Assembly: GCA_002269645.1 (NCBI GenBank)
Contig: NIVC01003288.1
Coordinates: forward strand, 29,517 to 93,516
Source: Macrostomum lignano
Lineage: Eukaryota
Direction of reading: 5' to 3'
DNA: 64,000 bases
The notes under the pieces were generated by a model. It did not search any database. It was not told the DNA's origin and worked only from the letters and a program-made list of their open reading frames with translations. Each line of letters starts with the position of its first letter. Within the stretch, counting starts at the first letter, position 1. Below are positions 10,264-53,200 of the stretch, piece after piece. The position numbers were made by a program, and so were the translations under genes.

Positions 10264-13200
10264 TCAGACTTCTACATCTGCATAGTTTGCAACTGTGTGC
10301 TTGCGCATCATTTTGACGAATATCTGGTCGAGAGACATCTGGTAGAGACTGAAGAACTGCACATTCAGCTTAGCTCTCATGTTGGCCAACCACTGGATCC
10401 TTGCTGACAGTCTAGCCGTGGTCGGAGTCGGTATCCGGAACTGGACTGACGCCCCAACATCATCAATGAGGATGGCATGAGGAAACTTTTTCTTAATGGC
10501 CGACTTCAATTCAGCCTTGCGTTTCGACAGTTTATCTTGGCTCGACGTAGCCGACAGCAGAGCATCCAAGGTGTAGTCTTTGCCGTACCTGTAAGAGATT
10601 CATGAAAATTTGACAGATAGAGCCTGCTGAAGCCCAGAGATCAGAGTAGACTGGGATGAACTGGTGAAAAGTTTTCTATGCTTGGTATAATGACGAGCAA
10701 AAAGTAAAAAACTCAGCAGATAATTTTCGCACAGAGGTACTCACTAATACGGTACTATTGTCCAAGTACCTGTCAGTCGCGAAAAATGCAGCTAAAGCCT
10801 ATACTTTCGCTTCCTTGCTGCTCCTCTGACCCACTGCACTAAACAAAAAAATACTTACTGACTTCGCAGCTGCTGGACAGTGCCGAATCCGATCATGCTG
10901 CCTTTGTCCATGACGCACAGTCTGCTGCAGAGCGCCTCCACCTCCTCCATGCTGTGCGTGGTCACCACCACTGTCCGATGACCGCCCAGTGCTATACCGC
11001 GGATCGCCCGCCAGATGCCGCGTTTATTCTCCGGATCTACTCCTGAGGAGGCCTCATCAATGACGACAACAGATGGACATCCAAGAAGCGCAATGGCGAG
11101 GCACAGGCTGCGTTTATTACCACATGAAAGTTGTTTAGCTGGCTTGAACCTATCATCGACAAGTCCGAGTCCTTGAATGAGCCTGTCTGTCTGCTTCATG
11201 ACAGTGTTCTCTGGAACGCCTCGGATACGCGCGTAGAAGATAATGTGCTCCTCAACTGTGACTTGTCGGAACAGCGGATCGTGTGCGGGCAGAAGCCAAC
11301 GACGCCGCGCTGAGTTCCCAGGTGACTTTCCAGCCAGGCGCCGCCCAAATGGCGGACCTCGACTTCGCCACTCGATGCGGTCAGCTGTCCGACGATGGCC
11401 GACATCAGAGTAGTCTTTCCGGCTCCGTTCTGGCCGAGCAGGCCGAAAATTTCACCGGTCATGGCGCCAAAGGTGACGCCGCGCACTGCATAGACGCCGT
11501 TGGGGTAGACTTTCTCCACATTGCGGACTTCCAGCAAGTTTTGGTTGCTCCTCGGATTCTTTAATAGCCGCTCTGTTTCCATCAGAACGCCTTTTTCATC
11601 TTGTTCATTTAATTTTCTTTTCTGTCTGCGCTTAGCGACATTTCGAGATGCACATCGCGCGTTTGCAAAATATTTAATAGCGGACCAGTTTTCGTAATGA
11701 TTAACAATATGATTAGCAATAAAATATGAGCTCCCATTGCACTGAGTGCATGTACGGTGGCAGATAAATTTAAAAAAGTCTCTCGCAGTTCGGGAATTTC
11801 TTTCGTCAACTCCTCGTTATGGTAAAGTAAGCCATAAACAACAATTTTCAGTGCCGTGAAGGTCAGCATCATGGGAGCGAGCGGTGGAACGAGCCACATC
11901 GCAATTGCGCTGGCGATGCGGCTTTTCATTAAAACGTGACCACGGACAAGACGAAGAGGATGAAGAACAGGTATATCGCTAAGACACTGTTGCTTGGAAT
12001 GCGCTGCATCGCACCAATGCAGTAGATACACAGAAGGTTGCTCACGGTGCCCAGCAGCAGAAGTGGAAGCCAAACATAGCAGAACAGAAATGCGCTGATA
12101 TACCGATCCCATATCATGCACACGAGAATTGATAGCACAGCGAATGTCAGGTACTGAATCCAGTGGATGACGAACGTGTTGACCCAGTAAGCAAAGCTGC
12201 TCAGTCCCATGATTTGCATCTGTTGCCTGACGCCAGTGGATCTATCTTCAACAGGGTCGGACATGAAGGTGACTGGGATGATCGAAATAGCAAAACTAGA
12301 ACAATAAGCTCGTTTTGAATGCTGTAGTATTGCAGAAACGGTATGACGCTTATCATGTGAACCGATTCCGGAGAGATGTCATCGGGGGCAAACATTTTCC
12401 AAAGTTTTACAAAGTAGGAAGCCAGCGGCTTTTCCGACACTTCATGCCGGGGCTTGCGCCAAAAGTGTCCAATAGAAAATGATCTGTCTCCATTTGATTG
12501 TGTCCCGCTCCATGAACTGGCATAAATGATGTAACAATGCTCTTTGCAGAGATTCTCTAGCTCCGGTCTTAACTGCTGACCAGGAAGAATGAAATCTCCG
12601 ATTGACTCCTTGCCCTTCCGCACCACATCGAAGTGGTAGTTGGCCAGATATTTGCAGGCAATCCGAGCGACTTTTTCTTCTCCTGTTTTGTCGTACACGC
12701 AAACAACATTGTCAGTTGAATACAGTGATACTACTGGCTTTCTGACAGCTTCTGCCATAATTTGCTGCACTGTAGAGGTATAAATCAGCTCTTTAAAGGA
12801 CCTGTTGTAGGAGACATCCCAGATAAGATACTTTGCCATGGGATAGTTTACCTTGTAGTTGTTTTTTTCCATGTAAGCCAAAATGCCAACAACTGCAATG
12901 AGCACAAGAGGCATCACAAAGCGGCAAATGACTTGCACCGACGATCTTACCTGACGGCGCAGATTCGTCGCCATCAGCGATGCAAATGTCCTGCAAACTG
13001 AACGCCGCAGCTGACTAACTTCAAGATCGTTCTGCCGTAGTAGTGCCAAATCTCCCATGCGCCTTTTTGGCGGCTCTTCCTTTGTGGATATACTTATCAT
13101 ACTGGCTAGGTTTCGGGACCGAATGCCCGATACAATAAACCCAGTGTCCAGATCCTTGATGCGCATAAAAATATCGTCCAAGTTGGCTTGCGACACACCG

Positions 13201-15790
13201 AATGCGGCAACTGGGGATCCTTTTCGTCTTCTATGCCACTCGAGCTTCTTCACAACGGCAGCTAGCAGGTGCAACTCAGAGGCTGCTTTTGACTGTGCAA
13301 ATGAGACGTTTAACTGCAGCTCCGTGCCTGATTGGTTGATCAGAGTAACCCCGCGTGGCAATGTGTGGACGAACGCTTGAGCCTTCCGTTCAGGTCTCAG
13401 CGATACGTTGATAGTTGGGCAACAGCCAAATCGATTCTTTAGGAACAGCGACGATCCCGCGCAGATAAGCCGGCCTCCAGAAATCACCACTTTTCTATCT
13501 GCTAGCATATCCGCCTCGTCCATGAACTGAGTGCACATTATGAGACAGCGACCTTGCTTGCGCTCTTCCATAATCTGCCAGAGATGCCTTCTAGACACGG
13601 GGTCGAGACCCCTAGTGGGATCGTCCAGCAAAATTATTTCCGGGTCACCCAGCAGAGATATGATGCAGCACAGCTTTCGCAACTGTCCACCGCTCAGGTC
13701 CACTGCTCGAACATTTTCCTTGCCACTTAGCAGCAGTCGCTCAAGCATTTTATTGACATTTTCAAGCTGGCTCTCCAATGTAAAGCCTTTGCTCAATGCT
13801 GCCAGCTTGAGGCTCTCCATCACAGTGAGCTGCTGGCTCAGCATGTTTGTCTGGCTGCAGACGCTCACGATTCGGCGCAGTGTCATGCATTGGTAGGGGT
13901 CGCGGACCATCCGATTGCCGATGTAAGCAGCGCCGCTTGACGGAGTCAGGTCGCCAGTGAGAGCCCGGATCAGAGTGGTCTTTCCAGCACCGTTGTGCCC
14001 GATCAGGGCGGTAATCTGGTCGCGGTAGATTGTGCCTGCAATATTTGGCAGTTTGGAGAAACCAGTGCACATTTTCTATGATGCGAAGCTGTCCAATCTT
14101 TTAGCGGCACATTTGTATTCACTTTTTAAAGCTTAGTTTGCAAGTAAACTATTTTACGGTTTAAACAAAAACAAAAGAAATTACGTAGAAAGAAAATAAC
14201 TCTATCAGGTTTTCACTTACAGGTAAATGAATCCAAGGCTTGAACAAAATTTTCCCGGTTTTTGAACGGAGTGCAGCCTCGTTCGTAGCTAACGCTTAAA
14301 TCATTCACGCAAACTGCCGGCGACCCACCGGGCACTGGTTCTATCGTCTCGGGGTCCTCCGGCTCTTGAAATTCCATGGGTAGGTCAGTCTTGGGTGCGT
14401 CTTCCTTAGGCATCCAGAAACTTGGACTAAATATATAAGTAAAAGGTAGCCGAAAGCCGTTGCCGCTGCTTATCATGAAGTCTAAATATATCGCCAGCAC
14501 TGTCATGACGAGAGGAAATGCCATCATTCCTGTTAGCGCTGTCTTCAGATAGTCCTTCTGAAAATTATTCCATTTCATGTACTCATTAGATCGAAAAGTG
14601 TATAATGTGTACAGCGAATATTGAACCACGTGACCAGGTGGGAATATCAACAGAGTGTTAAGAATGTAGTCCATCTCCTCCATTTTTGTCAGATTAATCA
14701 CGCCCAACACAGTGATTGAAACCATCGCCATGATGATGGCCACCGTAGCCACCACAATGAGGTAGAAGGTGCGCAGAAGCACAGTCAGCAGGAGGCTCAG
14801 CGACGCCATCGAGTAGATGTAGGCGAAGAAGACGAGTCCGAACTGTAGCGCACGCTTTGCAGGAAAATAGTCTGAGCACTGCAGCGTGTAGCAGGGCCCG
14901 ATGACTGCGGAAAACACTGCGCACTCCACCACTACTGAAGTGATGATAACAGTCCAGTAGGCTCCCACCGACAGTCCATTGCTGAACATGAGCTGCAGGA
15001 AGCCGCACTCTTTCAGACCAGAGATGAATGCGATGGTGGAGGCAGTGAAATACACCATGCAGCCGGCTGTGGCGATGAGTAAGTGGTAGAGCAAAGTGAC
15101 AGTGAATGTATAGAACATTTGTCCAGTGGACTCAACTCGTTCGCATATTGTATTGGCCCTTTTCTTGCTTGGCAGCACGCCGACACCCTGGTTTTTAGGG
15201 AGCTCTCGATCCAAGGTGTCGGTGTAGCTCACGAACTGGACGTCACGGAAGAGGCGGCCGTCCTTGCTCAGGGAGCGCAACATCAGCTGGTGGAGGAACG
15301 GGCAGGCCAGGTCGGCCTCTGGCATGTGGAAGCACTCAACGAAGTGTCCGACTTTGGAGCTGTAGCTGACGTGAGCAGTTTTGCTAACTTTGACTTCATC
15401 GAGCGCTTTTTTGTAAAAATCTAAGCTGCAAGATTTCCTGCTGCGACATTCTTTCATCCAATCTGGTTTCCATCCATTCACTGTTGCAAGCTTTTCCAGC
15501 CTGTCCATTTTGTTTAAAATGTTCCCTTCGTGACTAACCGAGATGTTCCAGGTAAATCGCTCTGAATCAACTATCTTCTGCGCACTGACTTGGCCATCGG
15601 AGCTGCCGGCCAGTGACTGTACCTCGAGTAGCCAGAAGTTCGAAGGTAGCAGCACGATAGCAGCAATGAAGAGCGGAACACGGAGAATCTTGAACTTGAG
15701 CAGCAAGAACAGGAGAAACACGGCTTGCTTTATCCGGATCGAAAAAGTAATCTTTGGGGCCGACGATTGCAAATGCTGCATAGCCGCCAT
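10264..15790 (-). CDS. ABCA-subfamily full ABC transporter, paralog 2 (3 exons: 15790-14221, 14035-10859, 10589-10264; about 4 single-base frameshifts)
   Basis: Same architecture as paralog 1. Motifs GHNGAGKTT, LSGGQ, LLDDPTRGLDP, CTQFMDEAD, GQNGAGKTT, LSCGN, TTHSMEE. Splice phases join in frame (FTC/TIYRDQ and RSQ/YGKDY). Confidence 0.94.
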
Positions 15791-23528: not shown

Positions 23529-23987
<459 letters not shown>

Positions 23988-25437
23988 ACTAAGACAGAAT
24001 GGAAAGAGAAATACAATGATGTCGCGTAGATTGAATTCTTAGAACAACTCAGAGGCTCTGTCCTGAATCGACCTGGATTGCTTTCAACAGCAGAAACACA
24101 GAAAACGGCCTCACTGCAGTGCCGGGAGATTTTGCTGAGGCTGCAATAATCCGGATGAGAAGCAAGCGATGCAGAAAATCAAGGTACGAGCTCAGCTTCA
24201 TTATCCGTCACTCGTGCAGAGCAATCGGTTATCAGTGATGGAAATTCTGCAAAAAGAATGCTTTGCGGAACTCACTGAGTCTGAAATATTTGTCTTGATA
24301 GCTGGAATCCTTTCGGAGTGTTTATGGCCCTGCCATCTGTTTCCTCGGATTCAAAGGTTTCGGTGTATTTCTTGTTTAAACTGTGCAGTTGCTGCGTGCT
24401 AATAATAATGGAAAATTAAAATCAATCCTAAACAGATGTTTCTAAAAATGGTTACTATCTACCTCGGGTCAAAGGGTCACGCCAGGGCTACCATCTGCAA
24501 TAGAGTTCTCATATGACACTTGCATATCCATGCCATGTGATTTTTGCTTACTCAAAATGGTGATCTGCGGCTTTATAACTATAGAACTATAGAACTCCTT
24601 TACAATGACGTTAATCTTTTTCACAGATTTCCCCAAGATAGTATCATTCCTATTCATTTATCCGTTTTGTTTTTCTTGAAGTGACCCCTTTGGAATTTAG
24701 AATAGCGGCAGAATTACATGTATTTCAAAACCTGCTTACCCATGCAAATGAGAGTTCTCAGGGAGTTGGGGATTAGCTATTCAGCTCAATGTCACGCCAA
24801 ACCTCTGTCCGAGAATCTTTCTAGCCCTGAATTAAAAAATTATCTGATGCAAAGATTGCGCATAAATTAGCAGCCGATCGCAGTATAAGACAGCTCTGAG
24901 GTAGGTAGGTACGATTGTTAATCAGGATATTGTTACTCAGGACACCAAGCCTGGCCTGAGGAAGATCTTTTATAAGTTTCCTTTCCATATTAGCCCGTAA
25001 TTTTAAAACAGTTTTTTTTTCAAAATGAGCGTATTGTAAAAGTTTTCCCCTGCGACACGTAAAAGCATAGTTTTCCAATTTTCTGAACCAAGGTTCAGAG
25101 AGGGTTTACCCTCATAACCATAGCTTGAGACGTGCAAATACTTGTTGACAGAATTTGCAAGGCGTGTAATAAAAATGGTCTTGAATTGACGGTCAATACA
25201 GTAATTATAATGTTGGTTGAGTCACCGCTCAGTTGCAGTCGGTGACTGGATAGGCACGTTAAATAAATTTAATTGCAGGCAGCTTGTACACCTGTGAGCA
25301 ATTTATTAATTGTACATCAATTAAACTGTGCAGTATAAGTATGCGACAATCGGCTGCTTGCAAACTAAGGCTACAATTTCAAGTTGTCAAGCCTTCTTAC
25401 CTTGCTATAGGTACTAATAGGTACTATCAAAGTAGCC

Positions 25438-27113
25438 ATGCGACTGCCTAAACTGTTGCCATTGCTTCTAATTGGAGGACTGGCGACATTGAATGTCGCA
25501 ATTGCCGACGAAATTAACTGCGGCGTCAACCTGCTGTACGAGACGGACCAGACCGTGATAGCGTCGCACCGGCTCTACGGCCGGAAGTCCTACCAGCCGA
25601 ATTCTGTCTGCCGGTACATCATCCGCGCCTGGAGCCCCGACTACCGCATCGAGATCACATCGGTGAGTTTTGACCTCGAGTACACTTCCGAGTGTACGGG
25701 CGATTCCCTGACTGTCTATTCGGGCGGAAACGATTCGAGTCCTGTGCTGGGCCGATTCTGCGGATCCCTAGACTGGTCGGTGCTCACGCAGAGCTCGTTT
25801 GTGGCTCTTGTGTTCTCTAGCGATGCTTACCTGGAGAAAGGCGGCTTCCAGCTGCGGTACCGGTTCGTTTCCAAAGACGAGTACCAGAAGCGAATCGCTT
25901 GTCCCAATGGCTACTTGGCCTGCAACAGTGGCAACGGCTGCTACCCATCCAAGTGGAAGTGCGACGGAATCAAAGACTGCAAGGACGGATCGGACGAACA
26001 ATTCTGCACGAGCACGCTTACCTGTCCAAGTGGCCAGGTTGCCTGCAAGGATAACTCCAAATGCATTTTTTCTGGCTGGTGGTGCGATGGCTTTCGCGAC
26101 TGTGGTGATGGCAGCGATGAGACAAGCTGCAGCGGCGGTGGCAATACCGGTGGCAATACTGGTGGAGGCACTGGAGGCAGCACCGGTGGAAGTACGGGGG
26201 GAAGCACTGGAGGCGGCACAGGTGGCGGAACACGTAAGTTAACGTCTTTTAAGGTCTTTTCAACTCACTCAACGCAATCATGAATTTTCCGGTACTTGAA
26301 TAGCAGCTTTCTTGCACTTGAATTACGCCAGACCAGTAACTCAATGCAATTTACTTTGCTCTTGCAGCACCTTCGGGCTGTGGCACGCCAGCCATCCCGC
26401 CAGACGAAACTCGCATCGTGGGCGGCAAGGAGGCTGTCAAGAACAGCTGGCCCTGGATGGTGTCGCTGCGTCTCTTCGGCGGCCACTTCTGCGGCGGCAG
26501 CATCTACAACGCTAACTGGATCATCACGGCCGCGCACTGCGTCGAGAACTACATGTCGCCGTCGATGTGGGGCGTTGACGCGGGACGACACTGCCGGGAC
26601 TGCACTGAGGCGACGCTGCAGAGACGCAAGGTGACGCAGGTAGTTCGATATCCGAACTACGACTCGAGCCGGACTAACCAGGACCTGGCCATGATGCGGG
26701 TGGACCGGCCGTTCCAGTTCAACTCGCAGGTGTCTCCGGTGTGCCTGCCGAGCTCGCCGGTGTCGAACATGGCCAGCTGTTTCGCCACAGGCTGGGGCAG
26801 CACGCAGGGCACTGGGGACAACACCAGGCTGCTGCAGGTGATGGTGCCGATCGTACCCAACTCGATCTGCGGCGACGCGTCGCATTACGGAGGCGCCATC
26901 ACCAGCTACATGGTGTGCGCCGGCTACGAGCAGGGCGGCAAGGACGCGTGCCAGGGCGACTCCGGCGGGCCGCTCGTGTGCAAGTCCGGCGGAGTCTGGT
27001 ACCTGCAGGGCATCACGAGCTGGGGCGAGGGCTGCGCCAAGCCCCAGCGACCGGGAGTGTACACTCGAGTGCAGATGTACACCAGCTGGATCCAGCAGAC
27101 CGCTTCTGGATGA
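25438..27113 (+). CDS. Secreted modular serine protease B: signal-CUB-LDLa-LDLa-Gly/Thr linker-trypsin (exons 25438-26233, 26368-27113)
   Basis: Same domain motifs as copy A, intact triad, phase-1 GT-AG intron in frame. Confidence 0.96.
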
Positions 27114-28437: not shown

Positions 28438-28971
28438 ATTCAAACATCCACTCCGAGCGTGCACTGCTGTGACAGCAAATTCAAGCATCCACTCCGAGCG
28501 TGCAATGCTGTGACAGCAAATTCAAGCATCCACTCCGAGCGTGCAATGCTGTGACAGCAAATTCAAGCATCCACTCCGAGCGTGCAATGCTGTGACAGCA
28601 AATTCAAGCATCCACTCCGAGCGTGCAATGCTGTGACAGCAAATTCAAGCATCCACTCCGAGCGTGCAATGCTGTGACAGCAAATTCAAGCATCCACTCC
28701 GAGCGTGCAATGCTGTGACAGCAAATTCAAGCATCCATTCCGAGCGTGCAATGCTGTGACAGCAAATTCAAGCATCCACTCCGAGCGTGCAATGCTGTGA
28801 CAGCAAATTCAAGCATCCACTCCGAGCGTGCAATGCTGTGACAGCAAATTCAAGCATCCACTCCGAGCGTGCAATGCTGTGACAGCAAATTCAAGCATCC
28901 ACTCCGAGCGTGCAATGCTGTGACAGCAAATTCAAGCATCCACTCCGAGCGTGCAATGTTGTGACAGCAAA
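28438..28971. repeat. 41-bp minisatellite, 13 copies
   Basis: Unit ATTCAAGCATCCACTCCGAGCGTGCAATGCTGTGACAGCAA, near-identical copies, no spacers. Confidence 0.97.
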
Positions 28972-31493
28972 TACTGGCAAAAAATCCAATCAAATAAGGG
29001 TAAGCGTGCCTGCACTCTCAGATTCTTCCCAAGTAAAATAATATCTAAAATACCGCTCCGTAGGTCTGTAAGCCTGTACTTTCCGCTCTGGTATTAAATT
29101 TCAGCTGATGCATCCACAAACATACGGGCCTAAGGCCTTCGCTTATCTCTGCTTCTCCACTTCTCTCTCCTATTTTGTTTTTCCTCTTTCTGGCTTCGCT
29201 CTCGACTTCTCTCGGGCAGTGAGTAGGCGTTGGGCTCGACATCCTTCCGCTGACTCACCGGAGAGCTCTCGAATGGTGCCAAAGCTGGGATCGCAAGACT
29301 GAGGGCTCCAGTCTCTTCAAGGGTCAGGAAAGTAGCAGTCCTTGAAATCAGCTTCCGGATAATTGCTTTTGGATAGTACTTGGACTTTTCCCTTGATTTT
29401 TACGTCAAGTATACCACGATTGGACTCTTAACACCCCGACTCTCGTGTTTCTCAAGTCTCCGGGTTCTCAATGACAGGCCAACGCTAAGGCACAGTGAGT
29501 GTTTGCATGTACATTCTACTGTGCATAAACCCTTTGCTTATTATCACACACACATTCACGAGTTACGATAGCTAAAATTGGTTTCTCAAACAGTTCTCAT
29601 GACGCCGATTCGAACCTGTTTTACAACTCATAGAGGAGCTCAGTCAGAATCAAAATTCGCTTTCATGAGGATAATAGTGCATCTTCTTGGGTTGAAGTCC
29701 TGAGCTGTTCCAGGCACCCTATCCTACGAGATAATTGATCCTTTGTATCCATTTTTGCCTCACCTGGGAACTTCCATATCTGCTTCAGTTTCTCCTGCCT
29801 CTGTCGCAAGCCATCGCCAGTTCCTCATTTGCTCCCTCTCTTCATCACAGGTGACAACGTGGCGAATACGAAATTATGACGCACAAATTATTCTTTCCCC
29901 GCCCCATCATTTCCACTTCATCTTTTAAAAGCACCTGGGACGCTCCAAACCGGACAGAAATGCTCACATATGCGGCACAGAACCTGTAATTCGAGCGCCA
30001 CTCGTGCATCACTAAAGTGCAACAGCACCTGTTTTCATTAAAACAGGTTAGACATTGAGACACTTGCGCCGAAACGAAAGTAAATCAAGATATTGACTAA
30101 TCGTCAAATTTTGTATGCATAGACGGATCGATAACAGCTCTGCCATATTGCTGTTGCCTTTGTTCATCCAGATATTTTTGCCTCGCCTGAGCAAGTCGCA
30201 GCCAAATCGATGGGCAGATTTCTCTTCCTCTCGCCAGGCTTCGGGGGATCGGAAAATTTAATTTGAGATCCCGATTGAGAATCTTGTTTCCTGTTTGTTC
30301 GAATCATGGCTGGAGGAAAGTGCAACATACAGATATGTGAGGAACCCAGTGCTCGGCCCTTCCAACTAACTCTTGAATTCAATAAACCTGAGCCAATCCA
30401 GGCGACTTTATCACGCCAGTCTGTAGCATGCGAGTTCCAGTGCCTTCTTTCCATTCAGTTTTGATCAGGTCTGTCAAACTAATCGGTTCTGTTATTGATT
30501 TCTAATTTGCTTGGCTTGCACCTGTGTAGCCGGTAGTCACAAAAAGCTAAGGCCGTTTTATTCGCGAGTACGTCGACTCCGCCATTGTCTGCTTCCGTGG
30601 CACTCCCAGCTTACAAAAGTTCCGCCCTATCTCACTCCTCATCCTACTCGCTTCACCTCACTGACTCCTCATCCTTCTCAAGCGCACTCTTCTCCGCCTC
30701 AAGACCTGTACTGCCTTTCATCTCCACCCCTTGCTGGCCTGATCGTCAGCTGCAACTGAAGTGACTGGCTGCGAGAAAGAAGTGAAGGGAAACTGTAAAC
30801 ACGCTCGTGCTTGCACCGGGCTGCCTTCCGCCAACCCGCAGCGGCCGAACAACTCTTTACAGAACCGGCCGGTAACAGACAGGGTTCCGTCAGAAGTCTC
30901 AGGCATTGACGCGCAAAAGTGAGTGGATTCCCCCAAAAAAGTTAAGAAGCGGTAGAAGACCTACTTGAGACGCAGTTGCAGCCCTCCTGGCCTCTTTTGC
31001 CCTTTCTCATCTCTCTTATGCAGCCGCTTTCATAGAATTTAAATGAACAAAATAATTCACCCGAGAGAGTTTACTGAGGAAAAAAGTACACGTCTCGGAG
31101 GGGTGGCAGTTTCACTTAATGAGGCTCCGTTTCGCAGCGGGGATCCTGGTTGCTGAGTGTACCCTCTTCAGTGCCAAAAAGGTAGCTGCTTCTCAAGCAT
31201 TAGCGGTAAATTTCCGATGCTAATAATGCCACCTCTTCCTGTCAATTTTTAAACTCCAATTTAATACTTTTCAACACAATAGCAGCTTTCTCATTCTGCC
31301 TGGCATTGGAACTCAAGTTTGCCACAGAGGTTCCGGTAAGGCACTTATAGTAACTGCCATTATAGCTGCTGGGGACATGAATTGCAGTCCCAACTTTCAG
31401 CCACGAGTGGAAGCAATAAATTACCATTACTTTATTATATATTATGTTCTTTTTTGGCAGCTCGTGCTTAGCGTGTGCTGCCCAGTCCAAAAG

Positions 31494-31882
<389 letters not shown>

Positions 31883-34384: not shown

Positions 34385-36300
34385 CTCATTTTAGCATCGC
34401 ACGCTAAGCATCGGCTTGCGCAAACAGCGGTACCCGAAAAGCCTGGGAACTTGGTTGGCTGTCCCAGCCTCGCAGGTCCTGGGAGGGCGGTGTGGTGCAT
34501 AATGCATGAAAATTAAACAAAAATGCTTTGCTGTCAATTTTAACTGCCTGGCTTGGACAAACTTTCTCCCCATCCCTACTCTTTCCGCCGCTGTCGTATT
34601 TTCTTTTTTTGCCTCCCCCCACCGCTGCTAGTTTCCAGTTTCCTATAAATTCCCTCCTGAGCATCGGCAAGCGAGCAGCAAAAGAAAATAAGAAGGTAGA
34701 AATTTCTGGACTTGGAATAGAACTCACCCTCAGAAGGTGCGTCCTCACGTGCATACCCGGCGTTCGATTCTCGCTAATTGCACACAACTTTTTTGACACC
34801 TGTGTTTGCTTGTTCGTTCTGTCGGTTAGAATGTCTTTTAGAATGAAATTCGCCAGTTCGGTGTTGACCTACCCGAGTGAAATGTCAATTTGGACAGCCG
34901 GCTGAGGGCTGCCAGGCTAATTTGTTCTTCGATAAGAGTCGGTGACTTTGGCAAAGAAGCAAGACTAACACAGTTTAGCGTAGCTGAGCCACAGCACAGA
35001 TACCTGTGCAAGCTGTCAGCGCATTGAGCCAGTCCGATCTGCACCTTTGTTTTTTAGTCAGTAATTAATTAGCCTGTTCTGTATCACGTCCGACTTTATA
35101 CTTTCTCATCACCAATGGCGCCATCACGCTCTGTTCAATATGCTATACGAGCTTTATTTTGTTTATTTCGAAAACTAGACTGTTGTAGAAATAAAGCCGC
35201 TGCAGATAAGACGCTTACCTGTCGCTGACCAGGTCCTGGCTGGGTCCTGCATGGCCAGCCCGAAAAAGTTGGCATTCGACTTGGCGATTTGTTGAAAAAG
35301 CAGGAGAGGGTGGGGAGGGGAGCAGAAATCCAACTTCAGATGGGCTCCGGCTCTCGATCAAGATTGTGCCTCAGTTGTTCTTTTTCCAATTGCCTTCGTC
35401 AATGTTTGTCCAGTCATTGCCATTCAGAAGTCGCGTGTGTCCGCTGGCCTTCCCTCCCTCTGAGTTGGAATGCTAAATAAAAGACAGAAAAATGGGGAGA
35501 TTTGTGACCGCCTCCGAGCGCTCGGGGACGCTTGCTGGACAGAAATTTCCGCTAACAAACCTGGAAATATTAGAACCCACCTGCTGCCTCGTCTTTACCT
35601 CTCGCTTCACAATTTCTTGGCTTGCCCAGAAATTTCTAGCTCTCAGCCGTGCCCCTCTCTGCTTGCTGCCCGTCAGTTCCCAGATGCCGTTCCTCACCGA
35701 TCTCGGAGCAGCCCCCGTCTGCTGCCTGTCACAAAGAAGCATTCTCAGCTTACTCGGACGAAGAACGAAGTCTCGCTCAGCCTGTCTATTCCTATGCCGC
35801 CGCTATTTCCCCTGCATCATGCGGCGCCTTCGTGTCCAACTGTGCGCCTGGCGTTCCGTCTGGCTAAGGCCGAAGTGTGCGTACGAAGTTCGTAGATAGT
35901 AAATTTCTCTGCGAAGATTTGACAGCTATTAATTCTGATAATCACGCTTCTGTGCCAGGTTCGCAACTCTAAATTTAGTTTAGATAATCTTACAGCCGCT
36001 CAATCAGCGGCTTTGTGTGATAATAGCACCATCCCTACCCATAAAAGACAATGCAAAAGTCAAGCTAAAAACACCGAAGTCCAAATTAAGCTTGACTTTT
36101 CATCCAAAAAGTATCCAAAATTTTGACAGGCGAAAATTTGCGGTGCCACATTACGATTACCATACGACGATTACCATACGATACGATAATATGTTACGAA
36201 AACTTCTAAATATTCTTGTACCAACCTCTGTGTCCCTACCCGGACTCCCCTACTCCCCTTCAGAAACCATAACCTCAGACTCCCGACCCCAAAATCCCCA

Positions 36301-37200
36301 CCCCAGACTCCCTACCCCAGACTCCCTACCCCAGACTCCCCACCCCAGACTCCCTACCCCAGACTCCCTACCCCAGACTCCCTACCCCAGACTCCCTACC
36401 CCAGACTCCCTACCCCAGACTACCCACCCAGACTCCCCACCCCAGACTCCCTACCCCAGACTCCCTACCCCAGACTCCCTAACCCAGACTCCCTACCCCA
36501 GACTACCCACCCCAGACTCCCCACCCCAGACTCCCCACCCCAGACTCCCTACCCCAGACTCCCCACCCCAGACTCCCCACCCCAGACTCCCTACCCCAGA
36601 CTCCCTACCCCAGACTCCCTACCCCAGACTCCATACCCTAGACTCCCTACCCCAGACTCCCTACCCCAGACTCCCTACCCCAGACTCCCTACCCCAGACT
36701 CCCTACCCCAGACTCCCTACCCCAGACTCCCCACCCCAGACTCCCCACCCCAGACTCCCTACCCCAGACTCCCTACCCCAGACTCCCTACCCCAGACTCC
36801 ATACCCTAGACTCCCTACCCCAGACTCCCTACCCCAGACTCCCCACCCCAGACTCCCTACCCCAGACTCCCTACCCCAGACTCCCTACCCCAGACTCCAT
36901 ACCCTAGACTCCCTACCCCAGACTCCCTACCCCAGACTCCCCACCCCAGACTCCCTACCCCAGACTCCCTACCCCAGACTCCCTACCCCAGACTCCCTAC
37001 CCCAGACTCCCTACCCCAGACTCCCTACCCCAGACTCCCTACCCCAGACTCCCTACCCCAGACTCCCTACCCCAGACTCCCCACCCCAGACTCCCCACCC
37101 CAGACTCCCTACCCCAGACTCCCCACCCCAGACTCCCCACCCCAGACTCCCTACCCCAGACTCCCCACCCCAGACTCCCTACCCCAGACTCCCCACCCCA
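36301..37200. repeat. 14-bp C-rich/G-rich minisatellite, about 64 copies
   Basis: Unit CCCCAGACTCCCTA with a CCCCA variant. Confidence 0.97.
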
Positions 37201-38007
37201 GAGCCAGAATCCCGCAAGCCCATCACTCAGACCCTTATAGCTGGTTTCCACACACCATTGGAAATATGCGTGACCGTCTCTAACCCATTGAAAGCGGCAA
37301 TGAATGAAATCTTGCTGTCTTGCCAATACAAAGCTAATGGTGTGGGACTCAAAATTAATCAATCGCACGGAAAAGTGTTCGAAAGTCAGCTAATTCCCAA
37401 TGGTTCGCCAATCCGGACTATATTTCTGTATTAAGGTAAAACACACGGAGAGGAGAGAAGGGAGGAAGGCTGCTTAGTCGCAGTCGAGCCGCGAGAGTCC
37501 CAGTCAAACAGCCACGGCCTGGCGCATGACAATATAAATCAGCGCCTGGGTGGGCAGAATGAATCAAAGCAAAGATTTTAGAGCCTCTCTGCCCAGCCAC
37601 CTCTTGCCGACAGCAGATTCTGATAACTAGTGCGTGACAGCTCTGCGGAATCGCAGGCGTGCCGTGAATGCCTGCTTCACAGCTTAAACAGCTTAAGCTT
37701 TGCTGTTCTGTTGGCTTTTAATGGATCAGACTCTGCTAACTGATATTAAAAAATATGCATGCATATACATATACTCGTATTTACGGACTTATCGAACTTG
37801 ATCTGCAACTCAACTTAGGAAATTGCCATTGATGCTGCAATGCTGACTCAGTTTTTTAAATAGAACCTCACCATATCGCTAAGGGAGTTCAGGGAGGATG
37901 GTTTTTTGTTAGTTTTTGTTTTTACCGGGCATATATTATCGAATGGCCAATGCAGTGCAATGGGCCGCAGTGCAATGCAATGACTTGTTACAGAAGAGCA
38001 TGGAAGA

Positions 38008-46904: not shown

Positions 46905-48055
46905 CCTCTCATCTTCTCATCTCTCATCTCTCATCTCTTCGAGTCTCATCTCTTCCAGTCGCATCTCTTCCAGTCGCTTCTCTTCCAGTCTCATCTCTTC
47001 CAGTCTCATCTCTTCCAGTCTAATCTCTTCGAGTCTCATCTCTTCCAGTCTCATCTCTACCAGCCTCATCTCTACCAGCCTCATCTCTACCAGCCTCATC
47101 TCTACCAGCCTCATCTCATCCAGTCTCATCTCATCCAGTCGCTTCTCTTCCAGTCTCATCTCTTCCAGTCTCATCTCTTCCAGTCTCCTCTCTTCCATTC
47201 TCATCTCTTCTAGTCTCCTCTCTTCCATTCTCATCTCTTCCAGTCCCATCTCTTCGAGTCTTATCTCTTCTAGTCTCATCTCTTCGAGCCTCATCTCTAC
47301 TGCAGTCTCATCTCTTCCAGTCTCATCTCTTCGAGTCTTATCTCTACTGCAGTCTCATCTCTTCCAGTCTCATCTATTCCTGTCTCATCTCTTCCAGTCT
47401 CCTCTCTTCCATTCTCATCTCTTCCAGTCCCATATTTTTGAGTCTCATCTCTTCCAGTCTCATCTCTTCGAGTCTCATCTCTACTGCAGTCTCATCTCTT
47501 CCAGCTTCATCTCTTCCAATCTCAAATCTTCCAGCCTCATCTCTTCCAGTCTCATCTCTACCGGCCTCATTTCTTTGAGTCTCATAATCTCTTCGAGTCT
47601 CATCTCTTTTAGTCTTATCTCTTCGATTCTCATCTCTACCGGTCTAATATCTACCAGCCTCATCTTTTCCAATCTCATCTCTTCCAGTCTCATCTCTTCT
47701 AGTCTCATTTCTACCAGTCTCATCTCTACCAACCTCATCTCTCCCAACCTCATCTCTACCAACCTCATCTCTCCCAACCTCATCTCTTCCAACCTTATCT
47801 CTCCCAACCTCATCTCTACCAACCTCATCTCTTCCAATAACCTCATCTCTTCCAACCTCATCTCTTCCAACCTCATCCCTCCCAACCTCATCTCTCCCAA
47901 CCTCATCTCTTCCAGTCTCATCTCTTCCAACCTCATCTCTCCCAACCTCATCTCTTCCAGTCTCATCTCTTCCAACCTCATCTCTCCCAACCTCATCTCT
48001 CCCAATCTCATCTCTTTCAACCTCATCTCTTCCAATCTCATCTCTTTCAGTCATC
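46905..48055. repeat. 15-bp pyrimidine-rich degenerate satellite
   Basis: Unit TCTCATCTCTTCCAG drifting to TCTCATCTCTCCCAACC-type variants at the 3' end; it explains the LISSS and EEMRL ORFs. Confidence 0.95.
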
Positions 48056-48595
48056 TCTCCGCTAGTCTCCTATCCTCTGTCTCATATCCTTCAGTCTCAA
48101 AAAGAATCCACTCTCATTTGCTGTCTCCTTTTGTCTTTTCTTCACTCTTCTTGGACCCGTCTCCCGCAGTTCCTCATCTTTACTGCCATCGTATCTCCTC
48201 TTGTCCCCCTGTCGTTTTGTCCGGACTCTAATCTCTAATCTCGTTTCTTTTCATTTCTCTTCTCATGTGGATGCCTCTTCTCTTCTTGCTTACTGTAGAA
48301 CAACATATTAAAATAAATTTGGAATTCCAAAACTATATTAAGAATTTGAGTAGACAGAATTATCATATATTTAAATTGATACACAATAAAACCAAATACA
48401 AAAATTAAGGTGGGATATGAAGCCTGAAGATGTTTTTCAAACCATTTTTTGATCGAAATTCTTTCCTAGCAGAGTGTAGGGTTCCTCATCCGTTCTCTCA
48501 TTACGCTACTCCCCCTCTAGCGCACGAACCCAGCCAGTCAGTCTTGTTGACCTTGGCAACCCGCTCGTGTTGTGGTTGGTTACAAACTCCAAGCC

Positions 48596-48717: not shown

Positions 48718-49020
48718 ATGCCGACCGTCGCCAAGCTGCAGCCGCTGCTGCCAGCGGCCGCCCTGCTAATGACGCTGCTGCTGGCGCTGGACGGCAGCTG
48801 CGAGGCTTCTCCACTGGCGCGCCACTCGACCGTCGCCCAGCCAGCCGTCGCTGAGAGCGGTCGGCACAGGCCGATTCAAGCCACTGACAATGAGCTGCAA
48901 CTGCTGCTTGAGTACCTGAGCGAGGCGGCCAGGGGGCGGCAGCACCAGGTGCAGCGCCGGAACGGGGAGGACCTGTCCCCGCCCAGGGAGCCACCTGGCA
49001 TTTGGAGGCGGCGGCGGTGA
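48718..49020 (+). CDS. Secreted neuropeptide-like precursor (100 aa)
   Basis: Signal peptide (LLPAAALLMTLLLALDGSCEA), propeptide, dibasic RR, C-terminal NGEDLSPPREPPGIW followed by RRRR and stop; GC3-rich codons. Confidence 0.8.
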   Translation: MPTVAKLQPLLPAAALLMTLLLALDGSCEASPLARHSTVAQPAVAESGRHRPIQATDNELQLLLEYLSEAARGRQHQVQRRNGEDLSPPREPPGIWRRRR

Positions 49021-49278: not shown

Positions 49279-49977
49279 TTAAATCTCTACCAAGCCTGGG
49301 TTTTGATCTGGTCTCGGCTTAGAGTGGCATTTCAATTCGACACATTTGAGTCCATCGCAGCACTTGGAGTTGTAGTTTATGCCGCCGTACGAGCTGTAGC
49401 CGTAGAACAGGTAGCAGGCCTCGCCTTCCAAGCCGCACCTGTTGGCTATTTGTGATTTTGAATACGCGCTCTAGAAGGTGGCGGAGTGCGTTAAAAGCCA
49501 GTCCCCAAGCACAGAGACTGTACATGCCTGACGATCAAAATGCCAGAGCTGCGGTACACCCTGTGTGAGCTGTGTATGAGTACGTGCCTGCGTACAGTAT
49601 TGGCGCGCTTGTACATGTGCCCAGGAGCCTCAGCTTGGGTTGATGGACGGATGTCGCCGAAGGCGTTGCGCCAGACTGTCCATAACCTTGCAAATAATAA
49701 TTATTTACTTTGTACGATTTTGAAAATGTTTAATCACTGTGATGATGCGACGTTGTAAAGGGAATAGGATGTGAAATTGCGATGGGATGAGTAACGGCTG
49801 AGATACAATGAGCAAGATGTAATCAAAAGCAATTCTGTACCCGAGATGCGCAAAGCCTGGATGGCTGGCAAACTCACTGGCTCCGCATGCAGCCGCGTCA
49901 CCGCACAGCAGGCACATGACCGTCACTGCAACAATTGGAGTCACGCAAGTGGATCCGCTTCCTCCTCGGCGCAGCAT
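49279..49977 (-). CDS. Secreted cystine-knot (ICK/knottin-like) peptide, about 88 aa (exons 49977-49878, 49445-49279)
   Basis: Exon 1 is a hydrophobic leader ending at a GTGAGT donor. Exon 2 encodes CGLEGEACYLFYGYSSYGGINYNSKCCDGLKCVELKC (C-C-CC-C-C). The junction is in frame using the AATAG acceptor at 49446. Confidence 0.7.
49548..49675 (-). repeat. Dispersed repeat family, copy 3 (inside the knottin intron)
   Basis: Minus strand TACAAGCGCGCCAATACTGTACGCAGGCAC..CTCACACAGGGTGTAC aligns with 956-1008. Confidence 0.65.
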
Positions 49978-50268
49978 CAACAGGCAGTAATATGAATTGA
50001 ATATCATAAGTTGCTACGCGAATCCAACTTGAAAATGAAATTATGACTTAATTCTCAATTTAAGCTAGAAACTTTTTTTGCCAAACTTCAACCATAGAGT
50101 TTTGTGACAGTTTGTAGATAATCCAGTTATTTACATTTGTATGCATTCAAATTACAAGTTGCTGCCTGAAACTTTAGAGTACAAGCGTAGCTTTTATATT
50201 TTAAATCTCGCACAACATCAATGAAGTGCTCAAAACGATGCGCGGAGACCCCCGGCGGTGCGTCAAAC

Positions 50269-53200
50269 ATGGCGGACCTGCTGTCCTCGGTTAACACCCT
50301 CATTGACAACCTCAGCGACAGTCGTCAGCAGCCGCGCTCAGCAGCAAAGGTAGGTCTCTGGACTGTAGACCGTAGGACTTCATTCGGTTCTGGTCTAGTT
50401 GGGTTAATGGATAATGCATCTGCATCCACAGTGTAGCGATGCATCAAATGCGACCAGGCCTAGAGTAGTGGAGGGGATATCAAGAGAAGTTTCCAGCTGG
50501 TCAGACTTGTTGAACTTGCTTGGCTGTCAAACGCTCAGCAGCCTGTCGAGCCGACCGGAACCGCAACTTCCGCTGCTTCATCGGCGGCCGCAGCAGCCGC
50601 AGCGGAGATCGACAAGCAGCTGGAACGGCTGGACCGCCTGTTCGCCAAGTCGAAAGAACGCCGGCGAAGAAGGCAGCGAAACCGGAAACAGCCTGAGCAG
50701 AAGCAGCAGCAGAAGGAATCGCAGAAACGCGATGCTTGCGGTGGCGGCGGTGGCGGCGGTGGAGGCTGCAGTCGGAGTCCCTGCAGCAACTGCACTACCA
50801 GCAACTGCAACGCTCTGAACGTCCTTTCAATCAGCGACAGCTCGGAGGAGAGCCCCAAAATTGGACGATGTTGTGAGTCCGGCTTATCGTACTGGAGTTG
50901 TTTCCACTTTTGCAAGCAATAATCCGAGCTATTTACCTAGGAGTTCAATGTAACAATGTACTGTGTAGGTGCAGTTAACGCCGCAACCAAGTGCGCGCCT
51001 GCAACGAAACAAGTAAAAGTCGAGGCTCGACAAACCCAGATTGAGCAGCAGCAACAAGAGCAGCCGCAGAAAAGGCAGCAAGTGCAGCAACCGGCTGCAA
51101 CCAGCAGAAGCAATCGCCAAGCCGGAATGGCGGGCATCAGCGACACCCTGTCGCTTGTGTCGCAGAACGCGTCCAACCGAAGGCAGTACATTGTACGCCG
51201 CGGTCGAAAGCCACCGCCGGAGCACACAAAGAAGAAGCATCGACTGCAGCAGGGTGGCGGCAGCTGGCGAGCCGCCAGCCCGGACGGCCCGAACACTGGC
51301 GGCAACGTGGACTTCAACTACCTCAAGGACGGCTTAGGTGGCGGCCATGGAGGCAGCGGGATTAGTGGAAACGAGCCGCCCGAGGGCCGCGAGAATTGCG
51401 CGTGAGTTTGGAGCGGCTCGGGGGACAGCGAGATAGCTTTCAGTTAGGAAGGGAGTGAATCTGACATTAGGATGGAGTGACTCTGGGATTATGTGAGATA
51501 TATTCTCAGAAGTATATGAGTACTCAACTACTCGTAAATTAAAATTAAAATAAGTATCGCAAAGCAAAGACAAAGGGACATTAAGATGAAGTGACATAAG
51601 GATGGAGTGACGTGATAATGGAGTGACATTAGAATCGAATGACATTAGGATGGAGTGACATTAGGATGGAGTGACATTAGGATGGAGTGACATTAGGATG
51701 GAGTGACATTAGGATGGAGTGACATTAGGATGGAGTGACATTAGGATGGAGTGACATTAGGATTGAATTACATTAGGATGGAGTGACATTAGGGTGGAGT
51801 GACATTAGGATGGAGTGACATTAGGGTGGAGTGACATTAGGTGGAGTGACATCAGGATTGAGTGACATTAGGATTGAATTACATTAGGATGGAGTGACAT
51901 TAGGGTGGAGTGGCATTAGGATGGAGTGACATTCGGATGGAGTGACATTAGGATTGAATTACATTAGGATGGAGTGACATTAGGGTGGAGTGACATTAGG
52001 TGGAGTGACATTAGGATGAAGTGACATTAGGATGGAGTGACATTAGGGTGGAGTGACATTAGGGTGGAGTGACATTAGGGTGGAGTGACATTAGGGTGGA
52101 GTGACATTAGGATGGAGTGACATTAGGATGGAGTGACATTAGGATTGAATTACATTAGGATGGAGTGACATTAGGATGGAGTGACATTAGGATGAAGTGA
52201 CATTAGGATGGAGTGACATTAGGGTGGAGTGGCATTAGGATGGAGTGAAATTCGGATGGAGTGACATTAGGATTGAATTACATTAGGATGGAGTGACATT
52301 AGGGTGGAGTGACATTAGGATGGAGTGACATTAGGATGGAGTGACATTAGGATGGAGTGACATTAGGATGGAGTGACATTAGGATGGAGTGACATTAGGA
52401 TTGAATTACATTAGGATGGAGTGACATTAGGGTGGAGTGACATTAGGATGGAGTGACATTAGGGTGGAGTGACATTAGGTGGAGTGACATCAGGATTGAG
52501 TGACATTAGGATTGAATTACATTAGGATGGAGTGACATTAGGGTGGAGTGGCATTAGGATGGAGTGACATTCGGATGGAGTGACATTAGGATTGAATCAC
52601 ATTAGGATGGAGTGACATTAGGGTGGAGTGACATTAGGTGGAGTGACATTAGGATGAAGTGACATTAGGATGGAGTGACATTAGGGTGGAGTGACATTAG
52701 GGTGGAGTGACATTAGGGTGGAGTGACATTAGGGTGGAGTGACATTAGGATGGAGTGACATTAGGATGGAGTGACATTAGGATTGAATTACATTAGGATG
52801 GAGTGACATTAGGATGGAGTGACATTAGGATGAAGTGACATTAGGATGGAGTGACATTAGGGTGGAGTGGCATTAGGATGGAGTGACATTCGGATGGAGT
52901 GACATTAGGATTGAATTACATTAGGATGGAGTGACATTAGGGTGGAGTGACATTAGGATTGAATTACATTAGGATGGAGTGACATTAGGGTGGAGTGACA
53001 TTAAGGTGGAGTGACATTAGGGTGGAGTGACATTAGGATGGAGTGACATTAGGATGGAGTGACATTAGGATTGAATTACATTAGGATGGAGTGACATTAG
53101 GGTGGAGTGACATTAGGTGGAGTGACATCAGGATTGAGTTATATCAGGATGGTGTGACAATGCTGCTTATTTTTATCAATCCAGTAACACGGTGGTCCAA

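Follow-up and report, generated by a model that had tools for sequence, protein, structure and literature searches.

The question raised by this locus is whether the minus strand of Macrostomum lignano DNA between positions 49279 and 49977 of a 64-kb stretch of contig NIVC01003288.1 (the window, meaning the whole stretch of DNA analysed) conceals a spliced gene for a toxin-like knottin, as an initial annotation had proposed. We consider it highly probable that the locus harbours a genuine gene whose product is a cysteine-rich secreted peptide, and, from transcript-based annotation, this is the expressed two-exon gene BOX15_Mlig003387g2, with a transcript implied to cover both exons. In fact, splicing of the minus strand exactly reproduced the proposed structure, namely two exons, a start at ATG 49977, the junction 49878/49445, and an 88-aa product (MLRRGGSGSTCVTPIVAVTVMCLLCGDAAACGATNRCGLEGEACYLFYGYSSYGGINYNSKCCDGLKCVELKCHSKPRPDQNPGLVEI). 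By translation, the coding part of exon 1 extends over 49878..50007 (-) when read from the annotated start, ATG 50007, and contains the entire signal peptide plus a single nucleotide of codon T34. A phase 1 GT..AG intron of 432 nt follows (49446..49877, minus strand), whose donor (A|GTGAGT, first G at 49877) and acceptor (...CAAATAG|, ending at 49446) are canonical and in phase. The coding part of exon 2 (49279..49445, minus strand) reads (T)NRCGLEGEAC...VEI up to a TAA stop at 49281-49279, and it encodes all six of the framework cysteines. Moreover, the statement that no ATG is present in the exon 2 frame, and that a TAG stops it on the upstream side, was borne out, with the TAG located at 49473-49471.

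The gene is already public as a hypothetical protein. Here, the 88 residues of the spliced product are identical (100%) to residues 11-98 of GenBank entry PAA52177.1 ("hypothetical protein BOX15_Mlig003387g2"; UniRef100_A0A267DU56), a 98-aa protein that starts at ATG 50007, and a word-index protein search returned this protein as its single cluster, with 100% identity and 100% coverage. The corresponding GenBank CDS on NIVC01003288.1 (GCA_002269645.1) spans 729 nt, equivalent to 50007-49279, and the GenBank locus sequence, taken on the reverse strand, is identical to 39279-60007 of the window. The GenBank annotation of the Mlig_3_7 assembly was built from genome-guided RNA-seq assembly with StringTie and TACO, with ORFs called by TransDecoder and gene boundaries drawn from trans-splicing and poly(A) reads (PMC5730564). 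Because the annotation of PAA52177.1 derives entirely from RNA-seq-based transcripts, a transcript with the 49878/49445 junction is implied. The identical junction between exons 1 and 2 (...CGDAAACGA|TNRCG...) is also crossed by UniProt A0A1I8GG92 (1658 aa, "CCHC-type domain-containing protein"), an independent M. lignano model from another assembly and annotation, and so the proposed junction is used by both proteins. This second model is a chimera that joins the ORF at 50929-51240 (-) with part of the knottin-like gene and further pieces, among them sequence antisense to the adjacent ORF and a retrotransposon gag that bears CCHC zinc knuckles. An acceptor-like site within exon 1 (TTGTTGCAG|TG at 49937, minus strand) is apparently the one used by this chimera, though it is probably non-functional, since its use would truncate the signal peptide.

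With the gene publicly annotated in three copies, its description as hidden does not stand. It is hidden from the prokaryote-style ORF track alone, as the RNA-seq-built GenBank annotation already contains it. Its reported absence from that track is true insofar as the exons fall under the length cut-off, but with a minimum of 40 residues both of them lie in ORFs of the bacterial list, where exon 2 is a 50-aa TTG ORF (49279-49431) and exon 1 is found inside a 100-aa ORF (49705-50007). Short, spliced eukaryotic genes that are already in the public annotation escape an ORF track of the prokaryotic style, which is the practical lesson here. As for published work, the identifier Mlig003387 was not found in the full texts searched or in supplements of M. 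lignano papers, most of the latter being incomplete or using other identifiers, and no peptide, proteomic, or expression-site evidence was found in the literature searched.

Two in-frame ATGs can open the reading frame. The one at 50007 precedes that at 49977 and adds MIFNSYYCLL to give the 98-aa precursor, and it is the earliest possible start because an in-frame TAG sits 9 nt upstream. The Kozak-like context is weak at both, each having a pyrimidine at -3, and the more canonical signal peptide begins at 49977. Further upstream, 184 nt from ATG 50007, we noticed a possible TATA box (TATAAAAG, 50191..50198, minus strand), and any transcript begun at this putative element would include additional ATGs at 50146, 50136, and 50095. 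On the other side of the gene, we looked for 13 variants of the poly(A) hexamer and found none in the 578 nt that follow the stop.

Read from ATG 49977, the N-terminus is built like a candidate signal peptide (49888..49977, minus strand), which we predicted with Kyte-Doolittle hydropathy and the (-3,-1) rule applied by eye. It opens with a basic n-region (MLRRGGSGST), after which come a hydrophobic core of 15 residues (CVTPIVAVTVMCLLC) and a c-region of small residues (GDAAA), with the 11-residue Kyte-Doolittle mean reaching a peak of 2.97 over IVAVTVMCLLC. We infer secretion and cleavage from these features. By eye, the best AXA site is AAA|C, after Ala30, with alternatives after G32 or A33, and the intron lies 1-4 residues from these candidate sites (A30, G32, and A33). 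If the signal were cut off after Ala30, the mature peptide would keep a seventh cysteine (Cys31) and, therefore, an odd number; if the cut fell after G32 or A33, just the six-cysteine module encoded by exon 2 would remain. The position of the site matters, since with an odd number of cysteines dimerisation or some other pairing becomes more likely. No propeptide separates the signal from the cysteine module. The mature peptide is near-neutral, with a charge of about -0.5 and a pI of 6.4-6.7.

The six cysteines follow the spacing C-x6-C-x17-CC-x4-C-x4-C that had been described for the locus, and a regular-expression match places this framework, the putative cystine-knot core, at 49327..49437 on the minus strand. 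Their C-C-CC-C-C order falls within about 30-50 residues, as is expected of a knottin. For an estimate of chance, we used 100 first-order Markov simulations of 64 kb each. Across the six frames of the window, the exact spacing, uninterrupted by a stop or an extra cysteine, is found a single time, as against 0 of the 100 simulated sequences, and a looser ICK pattern is matched twice in the window against a simulated mean of 0.17. The six-cysteine framework is not a chance pattern. The other loose match in the window is at 26153-26218 (-) (CRLQCFPPYFHRCCLQCLHQYC). Between the second and third cysteines is loop 2 (YLFYGYSSYGGINYNSK, 49363..49413, minus strand), and its depiction as unusually long and Tyr/Gly-rich was confirmed, with its 17 residues amounting to about twice the length found in the closest spider knottins (8 in PcFK1 and 9 in U1-TRTX-Sp1a). 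After the last cysteine, there is a C-terminal tail of 15 residues (HSKPRPDQNPGLVEI, 49282..49326, minus strand), which is predicted to be disordered (pLDDT <50 for residues 46-54).

For sequence relatives, an exhaustive phmmer search of 1.84 billion representative proteins gave no homologue outside M. lignano, with matches limited to the gene itself and the chimeric A0A1I8GG92 of the same locus. Nor did this search bring up a superfamily united by a common signal peptide. Pfam assigned no family to the precursor (E<=1) or to the mature peptide (E<=10), and a sequence search of the PDB had no match at E<=10. Alignment by hhalign with PcFK1 and U1-TRTX-Sp1a reached a probability of 28.6% over 17 columns, and pairwise BLASTP with the closest spider knottins gave an E-value of 0.007 with a partly wrong cysteine register. 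Neither the PF02950 profile nor the signal and pro region of the O-superfamily conotoxins was found in the precursor. Spider-toxin families in Pfam include Toxin_12, and there was likewise no profile match or significant similarity to a member that would place the peptide in a spider ICK toxin family. The kinship to O-superfamily conotoxins and spider toxin families suggested at the outset thus finds no backing in Pfam, the PDB, or the hhalign result. Judged by these searches, the gene has no detectable relative beyond M. lignano and counts, in sequence terms, as a lineage-restricted orphan.

Since the gene itself and the chimeric model were the only matches, no alignment could be made for AlphaFold2 or for a profile search, and structure prediction was carried out in single-sequence mode. 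The full-length 98-aa model was unusable (pLDDT 35.7). The model of the exon 2 peptide alone (54 aa) was of moderate confidence (mean pLDDT 61), with a cysteine core at pLDDT 70-90, a beta-hairpin formed by LKCV and KCHS (residues 32-35 and 38-41), and values below 50 in loop 2 (residues 13-23), as also in the tail. When this model was compared with the PDB using Foldseek, nine of the best 11 matches were ICK toxins of spiders or cone snails, and a tenth was the insect protease inhibitor AmFPI-1. Foremost among these was ceratotoxin (5epm_C), with a TM-score of 0.80 normalised to the target, a rmsd of 1.3, and a probability of 0.91. The ICK matches also include U1-TRTX-Sp1a, DkTx, muO-conotoxin MfVIA, and aptotoxin VII, along with PcFK1, covalitoxin, and omega-grammotoxin. 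None of these matches is significant, with nothing at E<=0.001 and a lowest E-value of 0.58. The claim of a knottin therefore holds up in part, in that a moderate-confidence exon 2 model resembles the knottins of spiders and cone snails, but the Foldseek E-values are at least 0.58 and the full-length model stayed at pLDDT 35.7. On the strength of this model, an ICK (knottin) fold seems plausible, with the chances for and against it about evenly balanced.

The two other annotated copies of the gene, g1 and g3, are on NIVC01000061.1 and NIVC01001405.1, and their proteins (PAA68294.1 and PAA92118.1) differ from PAA52177.1 by a sole signal-peptide change, M to L. All three copies share one and the same mature sequence. 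A recent whole-genome duplication has been described for M. lignano, and the three copies fit with it. With tblastn, using the mature and signal parts against the 64-kb window and the two other loci, no paralogues were found beyond the gene itself; judging by this search, the gene is present once per subgenome copy and does not form a local array. Between the window and the NIVC01000061.1 copy, the coding exons differ at 2/297 positions and the intron at 15/432 plus one indel (16/433), a contrast with a Fisher p of 0.013. However, we rejected purifying selection as a reading of this contrast, given that the flanking non-coding DNA is as conserved and that the copies are recombinant mosaics. 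In a 100-nt profile between the copies, the upstream non-coding stretch 50000-51700 has 3 mismatches in 1700 nt, and so it is the intron, not the exons, that is the outlier. As for the mosaic, the NIVC01001405.1 copy resembles that of NIVC01000061.1 upstream of ~49917 and the window copy through the intron and downstream, the switch among the three corresponding to about 49830-49917 of the window. This suggests recombination or gene conversion between the duplicated subgenome copies, or else an assembly chimera.

In its neighbourhood, the gene faces a plus-strand ORF (48718-49020) that had been called a peptide precursor. This ORF has 100 codons for amino acids, a hydrophobic N-terminus, and a C-terminal RRRR, and its stop is 258 nt from that of the knottin-like gene, tail to tail. 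No annotation lists it as a product and no homologue of it was found at E<=1, which leaves the peptide-precursor label attached to an unannotated frame, and because opposite-strand ORFs of similar length overlap it, we treat it as a candidate gene only. At g1 and g3, the annotation places another gene head to head with the knottin-like one; its product has 458 aa and no Pfam match on record. Mapped to the window, this neighbour would start at ~50221 (+), roughly 213 nt away from ATG 50007, and would extend across the 16-mer satellite; the annotation of the window's own contig does not list it. Two tandem arrays flank the locus, a 15-mer repeated 77 times (46929-48099) and the 16-mer repeated 99 times (51577-53159), and others in the window are a 14-mer x67 (36272-37202), a 41-mer x13 (28438-28972), GACA x115 (23529-23988), and GTA x130 (31494-31882). 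These large arrays explain both the pronounced GC-skew excursions and the long artefactual ORFs of the 'LISSS...' type. Elsewhere, a 623-aa open frame at 12201-14072 (-) contains an ABC transporter ATP-binding domain (PF00005, E 5.7e-25) and presumably represents one large exon of a gene for such a transporter.

How the gene is to be understood depends on the weight given to three other explanations. According to one of these, the transcript is real but non-coding or UTR-like, TransDecoder having called an artefactual ORF from which no peptide is made. The short length of the ORF (98 aa), its lack of homologues, the weak Kozak-like context of both ATGs, the upstream ATGs that come into play if the TATA-like box is used, the missing canonical poly(A) hexamer, and a between-copy conservation that gives no sign of coding constraint are all compatible with this. 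Yet a hydrophobic leader, an intron near the cleavage site, and an exact six-cysteine framework co-occur at the locus, ordered and in phase, and the framework did not arise in any of the simulations, which makes such an artefact very improbable, the least likely of all the explanations that we considered. A secreted, cysteine-rich peptide that is not a knottin is an easier alternative to entertain, though still an unlikely one. It would be cleaved after Ala30 to retain seven cysteines, form a disulfide-linked dimer or pair in some other manner, and have its ICK-like spacing by coincidence. This explanation takes its support from AAA|C being the best (-3,-1) site by eye, from the full-length model that did not fold and the non-significant Foldseek E-values, and from an atypical 17-residue loop 2. 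Against it, the intron parts the seventh cysteine from the six-cysteine module, and the exon 2 model independently converges on ICK-like structures.

The third explanation, closest to the original proposal, is a prey-capture or defensive neurotoxin that is kin to O-superfamily conotoxins or spider ICK toxins and acts on ion channels. The shared cysteine framework, the ion-channel toxins that make up the top Foldseek matches, and the CCxGLxCxxxKC motif, which is also present in PcFK1 and U1-TRTX-Sp1a, all speak for it. Arrayed against this is the failure of Pfam, the PDB, and hhalign to assign the peptide to any toxin family, together with a precursor that lacks a conserved toxin-type signal or pro region and has no propeptide at all. 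Moreover, a paralogue array is missing from the 64 kb, a superfamily was not recovered by exhaustive phmmer, and, with the mature peptide being the same in every copy, there is no sign of diversification. We also know of no described venom apparatus in M. lignano, an animal that is cultured on the diatom Nitzschia curvilineata. The diatom diet, the net charge of about -0.5, the lack of paralogues in the window, and the want of a toxin-style superfamily also count against the initial suggestion of a prey-capture toxin, for which we found no support, and we regard a neurotoxin of this kind as improbable.

This leads us to lean, with some reserve, towards an orphan secreted peptide with three disulfides and a knottin-like fold, whose role would be a housekeeping secretory one rather than that of a venom. 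In such a peptide, exon 1 would supply the ER signal peptide, and exon 2 would supply a mature peptide of about 55-58 residues out of a precursor of 88-98 aa. In a knottin, the cysteines are paired I-IV, II-V, and III-VI, the third bond threads the ring, and Cys V and VI sit on a C-terminal beta-hairpin. After removal of the signal, the six exon 2 cysteines would pair into three disulfides, most likely in this ICK arrangement, to give a compact core built on the C-terminal hairpin LKCV-EL-KCHS, from which the floppy 17-residue Tyr/Gly-rich loop 2 and the disordered tail of 15 residues would stick out. The peptide may then be secreted by one of the many gland or epidermal cell types of the worm and could bind an extracellular target through the exposed aromatic loop 2. 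The secretory cells of M. lignano include those of prostate, pharyngeal, cement, adhesive, and rhabdite glands, and dozens of its prostate-limited transcripts are predicted to encode secreted proteins (PMC5977470). With so many secretory cell types and such prostate-limited transcripts, a gland secretion is the natural default role. Candidate roles include a part in mucus or defence, the binding of a protease or receptor, and a secretion of glands or for reproduction, and the near-neutral mature peptide argues against a classical cationic antimicrobial peptide. A housekeeping secretory role is more likely than prey-capture venom, though our confidence in any specific biological role is low.

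As to what the gene may add, we found no paper that links Macrostomum with knottins, and few that join flatworms or Platyhelminthes with knottins or inhibitor cystine knots. We put forward only tentatively, and hold as rather doubtful, that this is a lineage-specific knottin, the first characterised cystine-knot miniprotein of a free-living flatworm, with loop 2 as a new functional insertion and an origin independent of the arthropod and molluscan toxins. An insertion of this sort would, for example, bind carbohydrates, surfaces, or membranes, or be cross-linked through its tyrosines. Should the fold and secretion be borne out, the knottin scaffold would be documented in Platyhelminthes, a phylum little covered in the literature searched, and a knottin with an unusually long aromatic loop would be at hand in an animal with transgenesis and RNAi by soaking, which makes the function of the peptide directly testable. 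At present, it stands among thousands of small secreted proteins that are restricted to one species and uncharacterised, in a genome that is already annotated.

Among known systems, the O-superfamily conotoxins (framework VI/VII; PF02950) have the same six-cysteine C-C-CC-C-C pattern as the flatworm peptide, and a muO-conotoxin (2n7f) is its fifth Foldseek match. Cone-snail toxin precursors belong to superfamilies with a conserved signal peptide, and conotoxin genes typically have three exons, one each for the signal, pro, and mature regions. In contrast, the flatworm gene has two coding exons and no propeptide, its product does not match PF02950 at E<=10, and neither O-superfamily conotoxins nor a conserved signal were found by exhaustive phmmer among the 1.84 billion representatives. 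The nearest ecological analogue is nemertide alpha, which, with other ribbon-worm mucus peptides, is a secreted, ICK-type product of a soft-bodied marine spiralian. Here, however, no nemertean protein was matched by the flatworm peptide in the exhaustive phmmer search, and while nemerteans are predators with toxic mucus, M. lignano grazes diatoms. Non-venom roles for a small disulfide-rich scaffold are exemplified by the knottin-type protease inhibitors and antimicrobials. The former include AmFPI-1 (PDB ID: 3bt4), the fourth Foldseek match, with 31% identity over 45 columns, though with a TM-score of merely 0.30-0.43 and a probability of 0.23. Most of the antimicrobial knottins are cationic, unlike the flatworm peptide with its pI of about 6.4-6.7.

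A closer resemblance is seen with two tarantula peptides, PcFK1 (PDB ID: 1x5v; its sequence was checked against the PDB before comparison) and U1-TRTX-Sp1a/OAIP-1 (PDB ID: 2ll1), both of which are in the Foldseek top 10. These share with the flatworm peptide the C-C-CC-C-C framework, a loop 1 of six residues that begins with Gly, and loops 3 and 4 of four residues each, with the motif CG...C...CCxGLxCxxxKC common to all three. The differences are in loop 2, where the flatworm peptide has 17 residues as opposed to 8 in PcFK1 and 9 in U1-TRTX-Sp1a, in its 15-residue C-terminal tail and missing propeptide, and in the host, which is a flatworm and not a spider. Taken on the sequences compared, the statistically weak likeness to these two spider peptides is at least as likely to reflect convergence or a constraint of the fold as common descent.
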